Of a DNA stretch of 64,000 nt, positions 32,531 to 60,755 are shown one piece after another. The stretch comes from Octopus sinensis (taxonomy: Eukaryota). The stretch spans positions 248,001-312,000 of the forward strand of contig NC_043019.1 of the NCBI RefSeq assembly GCF_006345805.1, read 5' to 3'. Under the pieces are notes generated by a model. It ran no database searches. It worked only from the letters and a program-made list of their open reading frames with translations, and was not told the DNA's origin. Both the position numbers and the translations under genes were made by a program. Position 1 is the stretch's first letter. Every line of letters starts with the position of its first letter.

Positions 32531-32662
32531 CTAATAAGTGAGGACCAGCTGCTTGATTTTTGACGGATCGTTTTCCTCCCAGTTGAAGTTCTTCATTATC
32601 CTGTAGATACAGCGCTTCAACACTTGTGGCTCACAAGATGGTTGATGGGCCTCAAAAAATGT
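32531..32662 (-). CDS. PSA-like gene terminal coding exon
   Basis: tttcag|, 132 nt, [43 protein letters not shown]; candidate AATAAA (minus strand) at 31808-31813. Confidence 0.85.
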   Translation of the reverse strand, partial: TFFEAHQPSCEPQVLKRCIYRIMKNFNWEENDPSKIKQLVLTY

Positions 32663-59600: not shown

Positions 59601-60755
59601 AACCCAATCTATTTCTTAAACGAGGGACATATTCATACAGCACAGAACGTTTTTTTACCTCAATACACGTCACTGATTGGTTGAAATTGCAGAAATTTAA
59701 GAAAAAAAACAACAAATATCTTACAAACTATAGAATTTTCTCAATGAAGCCAAGAGAAAAAGATGTTTTATAAATACATTCTACCAGTATACGAAGTTTA
59801 AAATTTTTTTAGTTACCTAGAAATTATGTTAAAAACTGCCTTTCAAACCGAAAAGATCCAAAAATTGTTTTAAACTCGTTAAAATTAGGTTAAAGACCGT
59901 CTTCGGTCGTGAGTGATTATGAGATTGCACTTAGAAAGTTTCCCTCCGAGGCACAAGTTCGAGCGAGGTTGTTTGTGAAAGAACAACAGTTACCCATGCA
60001 TACCCGTCTTCCCTCTCCACGCCACTGGTGTTATTCAAGGGAAACAAAAAGGGTCAATACTGGTACCACGCTGTATCGCCACCAGTGACTCATTTCTACT
60101 TCTGAGTGAATTGGAGCAACGTGAAGTAAAGTGAGTTGCTCGGGAACAGAAAACACAGCCCTGGGTCCAGGAATCGAACTCACAATCGTGAGACTAAGCC
60201 CAACGCTCTTACAACTGAGCCATGCGATTTCACACAGTATTTGAATTATTTATATTATTTTGATTAAAAAGAAAAATGAATTTCAGTCCCTACTAAAGTG
60301 TCTCCTACTATAGCCTCGGGTCAACCAAAGCCTTGTGAGTGGATTTGGTAGACGGAAACTGAAAGAGGCCCGTCGTATATATGTATATGTATATATATAT
60401 ATATATATATATATATGTGTGTGTGTGTGTGTGTGTGTGTGTGAGTGTGTGTGTGTGTGTGTGTGTGTATGTGTGTGTGTTTGTGTGTCTGTGATCGTCT
60501 CCACAACATCGCTTGACAACCGATGTTGGTGTGTTTACGTCCCCGTAAACTAGCGGTTCGGCAAAAAGGGGACGTTTGGCAGCCTTATTAAAACATATAT
60601 ATGACTTACCTCCGGATACATAGCAAAGATAAGTTGTTGACACATCACTGAGGAGACAGACTTGAGGACCTTTAATTGGTTTTCGAGTGTTGAATCTTCG
60701 GAAACTAACAAAGAACTTTCACGAAAGAATGCCAAACCATACTGACTGGAATATT
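32531..60755 (-). CDS. Multi-exon gene, puromycin-sensitive aminopeptidase (NPEPPS/PSA)-like M1 family protein with ERAP1_C-type C-terminal domain; catalytic motifs degenerate; 5' part not identified in window
   Basis: 14 firm and 1 tentative minus-strand exons, all flanked by AG/GT, phases compatible, no internal stops, ending in TAG at 32531. Spliced product follows PSA motif order: [12 protein letters not shown] (WGLVTYRETALL), WLIDG (WLNEG), [12 protein letters not shown] (NTWTKQMGFPLI), [17 protein letters not shown]...[40 protein letters not shown]. Confidence 0.9.
32762..33168 (+). mobile_element. SINE family 1 (~410 bp, internal microsatellite, AAAGAGT tail)
   Basis: ggcgcaggagtggctgtgtgg head, ggttcagtccc B-box-like; partial copies near 35840, 38470, 45100, 47810, 48730, 49550, 54500, 55550, 60300. 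Confidence 0.85.
33640..34720. repeat. Tandem repeat of ~330-360-bp unit with (CA)n core, 3 units
   Basis: Repeated aagggaacaaaaaattatacaaggaacttcattagctgac...tttcccacattttagtcaaa(ca)n. Confidence 0.9.
36472..36519 (-). CDS. PSA-like gene exon
   Basis: tttcag|, 48 nt, [16 protein letters not shown]|gtagac. Confidence 0.8.
36880..37030 (+). mobile_element. RTE-clade LINE 3' fragment
   Basis: [39 protein letters not shown] resembles an RTE ORF end. Confidence 0.6.
37040..37720. repeat. ~42-bp minisatellite, ~16 units
   Basis: Unit tgagttcctttcgagggttgggcctcatagaggcatagtggc with variants. Confidence 0.95.
38680..39110. repeat. Compound (ACC/ACT)n repeat
   Basis: Direct reading. Confidence 0.9.
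39249..39653 (-). mobile_element. SINE family 1
   Basis: Reverse complement of 32762-33168 type. Confidence 0.85.
39746..39898 (-). CDS. PSA-like gene exon
   Basis: tcgcag|, 153 nt, [51 protein letters not shown]|gtaatt. Confidence 0.9.
40604..40711 (-). CDS. PSA-like gene exon
   Basis: tattag|, 108 nt, [36 protein letters not shown]|gtaagt. Confidence 0.9.
40850..42120. mobile_element. Probable Penelope-like remnants with inverted segments
   Basis: Inverted pairs 41221-41278/41388-41445 and 41070-41095/41920-41947; hammerhead-like motif at 41674-41709; weak endonuclease-tail-like translation at 41950-42110 (-). Confidence 0.45.
42894..43354 (+). mobile_element. SINE family 1
   Basis: Colinear with 32762-33168. 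Confidence 0.85.
43820..43873 (-). CDS. PSA-like gene exon
   Basis: taacag|, 54 nt, [18 protein letters not shown]|gtaaat. Confidence 0.85.
44611..44753 (-). CDS. PSA-like gene exon
   Basis: ttccag|AA, 143 nt, (K)[47 protein letters not shown]|gtaagt. Confidence 0.9.
45268..45687 (-). mobile_element. SINE family 1
   Basis: Full-length reverse copy. Confidence 0.85.
46106..46325 (-). CDS. PSA-like gene exon (ERAP1_C region)
   Basis: ttgcag|, 220 nt, [30 protein letters not shown]...[16 protein letters not shown]+A|gtaggt. Confidence 0.9.
47045..47346 (+). mobile_element. R4/Dong/NeSL-type LINE 3' end (restriction-like endonuclease)
   Basis: [45 protein letters not shown]...PVIVGSLG...[16 protein letters not shown]. 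Confidence 0.85.
47557..47691 (-). CDS. PSA-like gene exon
   Basis: tcacag|, 135 nt, [45 protein letters not shown]|gtttgt. Confidence 0.9.
48639..48673 (-). ncRNA. Minimal type-I hammerhead ribozyme-like motif (Penelope-type)
   Basis: GUUU-CUGAAGA-A-GAGC UUU GCAC-GAA-ACGU-A-AAAC; relatives at 49432-49466 (-), 41674-41709 (-), 17106-17140 (+). Confidence 0.55.
48850..49169. repeat. Long inverted repeat (~150-bp arms, ~17-nt loop)
   Basis: tataatcaaagtaagcaacaaggatatccaaggtagtgtagtacaatcg ... cgattgtactacactaccttggatatccttgttgcttattttgattata. Confidence 0.9.
49759..49886 (-). CDS. PSA-like gene exon
   Basis: ttccag|AA, 128 nt, (E)[42 protein letters not shown]|gtaagt. Confidence 0.85.
50046..50470 (-). 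mobile_element. SINE family 1
   Basis: Full-length reverse copy. Confidence 0.85.
50793..50859 (-). CDS. PSA-like gene exon
   Basis: caacag|, 67 nt, [22 protein letters not shown]+G|gtatgt (phase 1). Confidence 0.8.
51750..52139 (-). mobile_element. SINE family 1
   Basis: Near full-length reverse copy. Confidence 0.85.
52170..52426. mobile_element. Mariner MITE
   Basis: TIRs ttgggttggtgtataattattgcggc / gccgcaataattatgcaccaacccaa, TA flanks; internal [15 protein letters not shown] transposase C-terminal remnant. Confidence 0.85.
53393..53512 (-). CDS. PSA-like gene exon
   Basis: aattag|, 120 nt, [40 protein letters not shown]|gtaatt. Confidence 0.8.
53715..53933. mobile_element. hAT-type MITE
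   Basis: TIR CAGTGGTTTTCAA / TTGAAAAGCACTG; perfect 8-bp TSD CACTAAGG at 53707 and 53934. Confidence 0.9.
54356..54403 (-). CDS. Tentative PSA-like gene exon
   Basis: atatag|, 48 nt phase 0-0, [16 protein letters not shown]|gtaagt; fills a length deficit versus PSA but weak similarity. Confidence 0.5.
55680..56585. repeat. Purine-rich (AGA/AGG/GAA)n tract
   Basis: Direct reading. Confidence 0.95.
56891..56974 (-). CDS. PSA-like gene exon (SYSKGAS-equivalent region)
   Basis: tcacag|, 84 nt, [28 protein letters not shown]|gtaagt. Confidence 0.8.
57790..58034 (+). mobile_element. RTE/BovB-like LINE 3' end
   Basis: [27 protein letters not shown]...[23 protein letters not shown] followed by (GATA)n. 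Confidence 0.85.
58184..58330 (-). CDS. PSA-like gene exon (WLNEG-equivalent region)
   Basis: ttgcag|, 147 nt, [49 protein letters not shown]|gtgagc. Confidence 0.85.
58375..59400. mobile_element. piggyBac-like MITE interrupted by the pogo-type element
   Basis: TTAA|CCCTTT left end; degenerate right end AAAAGA|TTAA; sequence resumes after the nested insert. Confidence 0.5.
58425..59227. mobile_element. pogo/Tc1-type non-autonomous element
   Basis: TIRs ccgtaaatcctcgagtatagtccgc / gcggattatactcgaggaattacgg, TA flanks. Confidence 0.75.
59447..59859. mobile_element. GG-terminal MITE with 8-bp TSD (Merlin-like), copy 1
   Basis: TIR GGATCTTTTCGGTTTGAAAGGCAGTTTTT / AAAAACTGCCTTTCAAACCGAAAAGATCC; 7/8 TSD match. 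Confidence 0.75.
60610..60755 (-). CDS. PSA-like gene exon (GAMEN/HEXXH-equivalent region)
   Basis: tttcag|AA..., 146 nt, [48 protein letters not shown]|gtaagt. Confidence 0.85.

Follow-up and report, generated by a model that had tools for sequence, protein, structure and literature searches.

A candidate pseudo-aminopeptidase related to puromycin-sensitive aminopeptidase in Octopus

Introduction

Pseudopeptidases are a recognized class of proteins, and family M1 is almost without a studied example. Yeast Tma108, the only M1 pseudopeptidase covered in a 2024 review of the class, keeps the HExxH-X18-E signature and is proposed to hold nascent chains through its substrate N-terminus pocket (PMC11266112). 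In human puromycin-sensitive aminopeptidase (PSA; gene NPEPPS, MEROPS family M1), the catalytic and substrate-anchoring residues are His352, Glu353, His356, Glu375, Tyr438, Glu319 (within GAMENW), and Glu180 (PMC10343166). Here, we describe a PSA-like gene of Octopus sinensis, part of which lies at positions 32531-60755, on the minus strand, of a 64,000-nt stretch of contig NC_043019.1; this whole stretch is hereafter called the window. We put at roughly three in four the probability that this is a real, selected protein-coding gene and that it encodes a pseudo-aminopeptidase, a very divergent paralog of PSA. It would then be the opposite of Tma108, with the M1 fold kept and the whole catalytic and substrate-anchoring machinery erased, in a gene under purifying selection. 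Its setting is a lineage known for molecular novelties, yet dead enzyme paralogs are common. The gene is already present in RefSeq and UniProt, under automatic names only, and literature searches on its accession numbers and on PSA in octopuses or cephalopods turned up no paper about it.

Results

A PSA-like gene lacking the M1 active site

A protein search using a draft splice of the visible exons as the query recovered RefSeq XP_036368355.1 (P0001), an O. sinensis protein of 833 aa with the automatic label "puromycin-sensitive aminopeptidase-like". The window contains exons 8-22 of the 22 exons encoding this protein (aa 257-833), and all 15 were 100% identical to it in a tblastn search of the protein against the window. 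A sequence-only reading of the window had delimited the gene at 32531-60755, and these limits proved exact: exon 8 opens at 60755, exons 8-22 run down to 32534, and the TAG stop occupies 32533-32531. The "14-15 exons" of that reading, joined at canonical sites in one stop-free frame, turned out to be 15, all bounded by GT-AG introns and translating to aa 257-833. Its description of the gene as intact holds for the fetched 87-kb O. sinensis locus (L002, CM016881.1), where exons 1-7 (aa 1-257) could be read and are likewise intact. It could not be upheld from the window alone, which carries only the C-terminal 69% of the gene, the first seven exons lying beyond the window end.

The motifs were called from HMMER alignments to the human PSA chains in the Protein Data Bank (PDB) and from a 72-sequence MAFFT alignment. 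GAMEN is replaced by E257-Y-S-S-Q261 (exon 8, 60742-60755, with the first base of codon 257 in exon 7), so Glu319 has become Ser. In place of HELAH, the protein reads S291-S-V-M-C295 or S292-V-M-C-Q296 (S291-Q296; exon 8, 60637-60654); there is a one-residue ambiguity in register, and the His and Glu residues are absent in both. WLNEG is represented by W309-L-I-D-G313 (exon 9, 58307-58321), in which the Glu serving as the third, distal zinc ligand is changed to Asp312. ISYSKGAS has become M363-I-Q-D-K-T-A-S370 (exon 10, 56927-56950); the transition-state residue Tyr438 aligns to Gln365 (56942-56944), or to Asp366 in an alternative register. About 10 residues of the PSA segment PIEVSVGHPSEVDEIFD, conserved before the Tyr helix, are also deleted from exon 10. 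Finally, the domain-I Glu that holds the substrate N-terminus (Glu180 in PSA) corresponds to Lys127. The sequence-only reading had listed the GAMEN, HELAH, WLNEG, and ISYSKGAS replacements from a hand alignment to PSA, and all four were real in the HMMER alignment to human PSA. Altogether, both zinc His residues, the general-base Glu, the third-ligand Glu, the transition-state Tyr, and the two N-terminus-anchoring Glu residues are replaced (7/7 PSA residues).

An alternative exon supplying the missing motifs would have overturned this picture. A six-frame motif scan of the window revealed no exon able to supply GAMEN or HEXXH, and tblastn searches with four intact PSAs, run against the window and the entire 87-kb locus, detected no rescuing exon either. 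The domain searches were in line with the motif calls. Pfam Peptidase_M1 (PF01433) gave 19.6 bits, under its cut-off of 27.7, while an intact snail PSA scored 288 bits; Peptidase_M1_N (PF17900) reached 41.2 bits and ERAP1_C (PF11838) 184.8 bits, as expected for the PSA-like, ERAP1_C-type tail that had been proposed. Among the features of an active M1 peptidase, HEXXH-X18-E, GXMEN together with the domain-I Glu, the catalytic Tyr, and a PF01433 score above the gathering threshold are all missing. We infer from these replacements that the octopus protein would neither bind zinc in the M1 manner nor cleave peptides.

The gene is under purifying selection in Octopus

At 90% identity, the protein falls into a cluster made up of the O. 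sinensis isoforms X1 and X2, Octopus vulgaris CAI9739623.1 (99.6% identical), and Octopus bimaculoides XP_014781587.1 (94%). The open reading frame is intact in all three species. The O. bimaculoides locus (L003, CM046623.1) was fetched and its exons were mapped independently of O. sinensis. All comparable introns (19/19) were found at the same position with near-identical splice sequences, all comparable exons (20/20) were equal in length, and no stops, frameshifts, or lost splice sites were found in the gene of either species.

Over 774 codons, the Nei-Gojobori method gave a nonsynonymous divergence (dN) of 0.024 and a synonymous divergence (dS) of 0.151 between O. sinensis and O. bimaculoides, that is, an omega (dN/dS) of 0.16 with a bootstrap range of 0.11-0.22. 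By part, the catalytic remnant had an omega of 0.12 and ERAP1_C one of 0.24. The flanking introns differ at 8.5% of aligned bases and contain 13 gap openings per kb. In the exons, 4.7% of bases differ and no indel was found in 2322 nt, against approximately 30 expected at the intron rate (P ~7e-14). Given this omega and the absence of exon indels, the reading frame and the protein sequence are both under purifying selection. The sequence-only reading had reached the same conclusion from stop-free splicing; the conclusion stands, with an omega far from the value near 1 expected of a pseudogene, and the splice path that had been offered in its support is weak evidence by itself (see below). What is found here corresponds to the definition of a pseudoenzyme, with the catalytic residues gone, purifying selection in place, and the gene kept in three Octopus species and probably in the cuttlefish genus Sepia.

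Descent from PSA and a cuttlefish relative

Among proteins of solved structure, human PSA was the best HMMER match (251 bits, end-to-end), followed by ERAP1 (122 bits) and by IRAP, APA, and APN (100 bits or less). When 1.84 billion representative proteins were searched exhaustively with HMMER, 3707 relatives were retrieved. The best full-length matches outside the protein's own cluster were only 25-28% identical to it, as was every PSA, and the named top matches were PSA or PSA-like proteins of a wasp, Hydra, Artemia, a snail, and a coral. Apart from a partial Sepia model, nothing above approximately 32% identity was detected among these representatives. The best non-self match (P0007) was considered as a possible cephalopod PSA and rejected, as its source is a metagenome scaffold, on which the gene is intronless. 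We likewise rejected the idea that the octopus gene is a true NPEPPS ortholog, in view of the low identity to every PSA and the loss of the active-site motifs; a paralog, as first proposed, is the better description.

The relative with the highest identity (31-34%) is CAE1318658.1 of Sepia pharaonis, a partial model with the automatic name "NPEPPS". It reads AETMAAQ at GHELAHQ, without HEXXH, and WLNEG is likewise absent. At the Sepia locus, EYCIN stands at the GAMEN position in the frame immediately 5' of the annotated start, and the derived E-Y is common to the octopus protein; the two proteins also have deletions in common in the 72-sequence alignment. CAE1318658.1 is the reciprocal best match within the retrieved set, and it clusters with the octopus protein in 300/300 neighbor-joining bootstraps. 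A profile search with the octopus and Sepia sequences revealed no further cephalopod relatives. Orthologs, which the sequence-only reading had suggested seeking in other cephalopods, were found in O. vulgaris and O. bimaculoides and, probably, in Sepia.

The Sepia model is incomplete at both ends, and the 71 kb that were fetched did not reveal its N- and C-terminal exons. The annotated start of CAE1318658.1 is an internal Met in the exon-8 homolog, and the open frame extends upstream of it (…FTEYCINPGLV; L004, CAHIKZ030005063.1, 9968-10000). A separate 487-aa gene call located just upstream (L004, 1-7942) may be the missing N-terminal half of the Sepia gene.

Octopuses and cuttlefish diverged a few hundred million years ago. 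Judging by the residues and deletions common to both, the dead copy probably predates this split and would have evolved much faster than ordinary PSA since then.

Predicted fold and distribution of the sequence decay

AlphaFold2, run on the 72-sequence alignment, predicted a complete four-domain M1 architecture (mean predicted local distance difference test score 83.5, predicted template modeling score 0.85). In Foldseek, the top match of the model was PSA (8sw0, E = 1e-53), so human PSA is closest by fold as well as by sequence. Template modeling scores were 0.86-0.88 against closed ERAP1, 0.84-0.88 against the closed forms of ERAP1, ERAP2, and IRAP, and 0.78-0.88 for PSA, ERAP1, ERAP2, and IRAP together. 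The N-terminus opens directly with the beta-domain, without a signal peptide.

Column conservation was measured against 66 intact relatives. The octopus protein keeps 7/20 near-invariant columns in domain I and 13/45 in domain II, compared with 6/7 in domain III and 5/6 in domain IV. Relative to the family norm, its identity to intact members amounts to 47% in domain II and 88% in domain IV. Because domains I and II have decayed while domains III and IV are as PSA-like as those of ordinary members, the erosion is aimed at the catalytic apparatus and not at the whole protein.

Exon structure and surrounding DNA

The spliced protein was mapped exactly onto the O. sinensis locus, where the gene consists of 22 coding exons and 21 introns over approximately 67 kb of AT-rich, repeat-rich DNA. 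For every intron, there is one unique GT-AG solution that reproduces XP_036368355.1. All coordinates below are on the minus strand of the window and come from this mapping. The 3' part of the 17.5-kb intron 7 occupies 60756..64000. The catalytic-domain remnant then continues through exon 8 (aa 257-305, 60610..60755, with AG/GT borders and supported by the PSA alignment), exon 9 (aa 306-354, 58184..58330), exon 10 (aa 355-382, 56891..56974), exon 11 (aa 383-398, 54356..54403), and exon 12 (aa 399-438, 53393..53512), where it ends. Exon 11, of 48 nt, has no PSA counterpart and lies in a low-confidence part of the model. The beta-sandwich of domain III starts in exon 13 (aa 439-461, 50793..50859) and is followed by exon 14 (aa 461-503, 49759..49886), whose acceptor is a tandem NAGNAG (cag|aag; 49886 or 49883) that accounts for the RefSeq isoforms X1 and X2, one Glu apart. 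Domain IV starts in exon 15 (aa 504-548, 47557..47691), as judged from the PSA alignment; this is the most PSA-like stretch, with 50% identity, including LQNDLFSL, to a human PSA sequence. Exons 16 (aa 549-622, 46106..46325, also placed by domain search) and 17 (aa 622-669, 44611..44753) encode ERAP1_C. The remaining exons are 18 (aa 670-687, 43820..43873), 19 (aa 688-723, 40604..40711), 20 (aa 724-774, 39746..39898), 21 (aa 775-790, 36472..36519), and 22, whose coding part (aa 791-833) and TAG stop (32531-32533) occupy 32531..32662.

A 13-exon path built by hand from open reading frames and a PSA sequence was also stop-free and had canonical sites, yet it was wrong when set against the annotated model: it contained two false exons and one false donor, and it overlooked exons 11, 18, and 21. 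The intronic open reading frames at 51480-51563 and 36728-36766 owed their place to a chance likeness to PSA (for example, "LRLLHWNF" vs "LRLSQKKF") and to usable AG/GT sites; they are outside the annotated gene. A supposed relic exon at 43782-43699 lacks a usable donor; exon 18 proper is at 43873-43820. Since a wrong path had the same properties, a stop-free GT/AG path is weak evidence alone, and the support for the gene model comes from the annotated models and from the between-species comparison.

Several repeats were observed in the rest of the window. A 6.9-kb stretch occurs twice, at 1-6905 and 24503-31392 (98.2% identical, 24.5 kb apart), and the second copy ends exactly at a 100-N gap (31393-31492); the pair reflects either a segmental duplication of recent date or an artefact of the assembly. 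Inside the duplicated stretch, on the minus strand at approximately 900-3823 and 25400-28326, open reading frame pieces broken by frameshifts look by eye like a retrotransposon without long terminal repeats, with endonuclease-like and reverse-transcriptase-like translations. A second repeat pair is located at 7112-9605 and 17555-20085 (94% identical). In addition, a short interspersed repeat is found in the introns in both orientations, often beside (TA)n, (CA)n, or (TGTA)n microsatellites; examples are at 32655-33020, 39424-39687, 45438-45659, and 61294-61659.

Discussion

In the explanation that we favor, the gene would have been copied from NPEPPS, lost the zinc-binding, general-base, Tyr, and N-terminus-anchoring residues, and kept the four-domain fold. 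The protein would most likely be cytosolic and serve, without catalysis, in binding or as a scaffold, with helical domain IV and domain III as its working surfaces, possibly directed toward partners or peptides that PSA also binds. Capture of N-termini in the manner of Tma108 is unlikely, because the anchoring residues of the pocket are gone.

Several points weigh against this explanation. The binding or scaffold function is wholly one that we infer. Asp312 might still coordinate a metal, and, on the sequence alone, some new chemistry is conceivable. No transcript-derived sequence was found within the 90% cluster. Exons 21-22 were not found in O. bimaculoides, whose assembly is riddled with N gaps at this place; the model XP_014781587.1 runs on past the donor of exon 20 (…VITTINN, then a stop; L003, 38206-38379) and is without these two exons. 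Residues 350-360 and 384-419 of the AlphaFold2 model are of low confidence, and the latter overlap the octopus-specific exon 11. As for the grouping with the cuttlefish protein, it could be inflated by long-branch attraction, and it was obtained with one partial cuttlefish model in a tree that has no intact cephalopod NPEPPS as an anchor.

Of the competing explanations, the least probable is that of a pseudogene, or an unconstrained decaying gene, whose exons look spliceable because GT/AG sites are plentiful. The wrong 13-exon path shows how readily this can happen, the catalytic domain is heavily eroded, and a first word-indexed search with a partial exon concatenation matched no protein; this last result reflected a limit of the index, as a fuller query found XP_036368355.1. 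Neutral decay is nevertheless incompatible with approximately 25% protein identity without any stop in 833 codons, and the upper bootstrap bound of omega (0.22), the exon indel count of zero, the intact frame and checked splice sites of O. sinensis and O. bimaculoides, and the full-length O. vulgaris protein all speak against it. Nor are the orthologs annotation copies of one another, as the DNA of two independent assemblies was compared. It is also very unlikely, in our estimation, that the protein is still a hydrolase or another enzyme with a rebuilt site, relying, for example, on Asp312 with newly acquired ligands or on a mechanism that needs no metal. The predicted structure retains the overall fold and the closed cavity, and the low omega of the catalytic remnant indicates that this domain is still constrained; on the other hand, all seven residues important in PSA are changed and the segment beside the Tyr helix is deleted. 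Moreover, the replacements differ between octopus (SSVMC/SVMCQ and EYSSQ) and cuttlefish (ETMAA/AETMAAQ and EYCIN), which makes a conserved new catalytic constellation unlikely.

The sequence-only reading had likened the gene to the cephalopod S-crystallins, and recruitment of an enzyme as an abundant structural protein, as in the lens, is indeed a conceivable fate, given that cephalopods recruited dead or weak enzymes as crystallins and that this protein evolves fast over long timescales. We found no support for the analogy and regard such a role as highly improbable: with its four domains and 833 aa, the protein resembles an ordinary cytosolic M1 member and is unlike known crystallin recruits, and there is a single gene per species, without a family expansion or another relative above approximately 32% identity among the 1.84 billion representatives. 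A specific version of the favored explanation, that of a regulator or decoy in the active PSA pathway, deserves more weight, although we still consider it doubtful. Here, domain IV would bind PSA, its partners, or its substrates without cutting. Pseudoenzymes often regulate their active relatives (PMC11266112), PSA joins protein complexes such as the SWELL1-PSA complex (PDB 9o5k), and domains III and IV are still PSA-like, with the first helices of domain IV the most conserved. At 25-27% identity to any PSA, however, common partners are not assured, and the idea may be called plausible.

The favored explanation, a non-catalytic PSA paralog, also has an evolutionary extension that we regard as less likely than not. 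The gene may be a coleoid-specific pseudo-aminopeptidase that was born from NPEPPS before the octopus-cuttlefish split, evolved fast between lineages and under constraint within them, and was co-opted for cephalopod-specific binding. In such a role, the protein might, for instance, serve neuropeptide or PSA-dependent pathways as a partner or decoy that does not cut. If a co-opted coleoid role is true, no M1 pseudopeptidase whose active site and N-terminus pocket are both fully erased would have been assigned a function before this one. Plain "puromycin-sensitive aminopeptidase" is the label of the O. vulgaris and O. bimaculoides entries, a name that would mislead functional annotation, enzyme counts, and the interpretation of proteomic data.

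The known system closest to the octopus protein is PSA itself, its best match in both sequence and structure. The two have in common the order of M1_N, thermolysin-like domain, beta-sandwich, and ERAP1_C, and neither has a signal peptide. They differ in that the octopus protein is only 25-27% identical, has lost all the motifs, and falls under the PF01433 threshold, and in that its catalytic domain is marked by several deletions and by one 16-aa exon specific to octopus. The Sepia protein CAE1318658.1 is a probable ortholog, with E-Y at the first two GAMEN positions, deletions in common, and no HEXXH, yet it is only 31-34% identical to the octopus protein. The thrips Frankliniella occidentalis has PSA-like proteins (XP_026276572.1/XP_052123420.1) that are also PSA-lineage paralogs with degenerate motifs (GTVGN, HGLVY, and ISCSKAAS). 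In contrast to the octopus protein, they are far less diverged, with 215 bits to Peptidase_M1 and the third ligand kept in WLKEG, and they are of independent origin; on these motifs, the thrips protein appears to be a second, younger candidate pseudo-PSA. TAF2, a TFIID subunit with an M1-like fold, is a non-catalytic scaffold of an ancient pan-eukaryotic lineage and not an offshoot of PSA; it was absent from the best matches of the octopus protein. Tma108 and the octopus protein are both M1 members thought to act by binding and not by catalysis. They part at the active site, as the octopus protein has neither the zinc site nor the N-terminus pocket (Glu319 to Ser, Glu180 to Lys).

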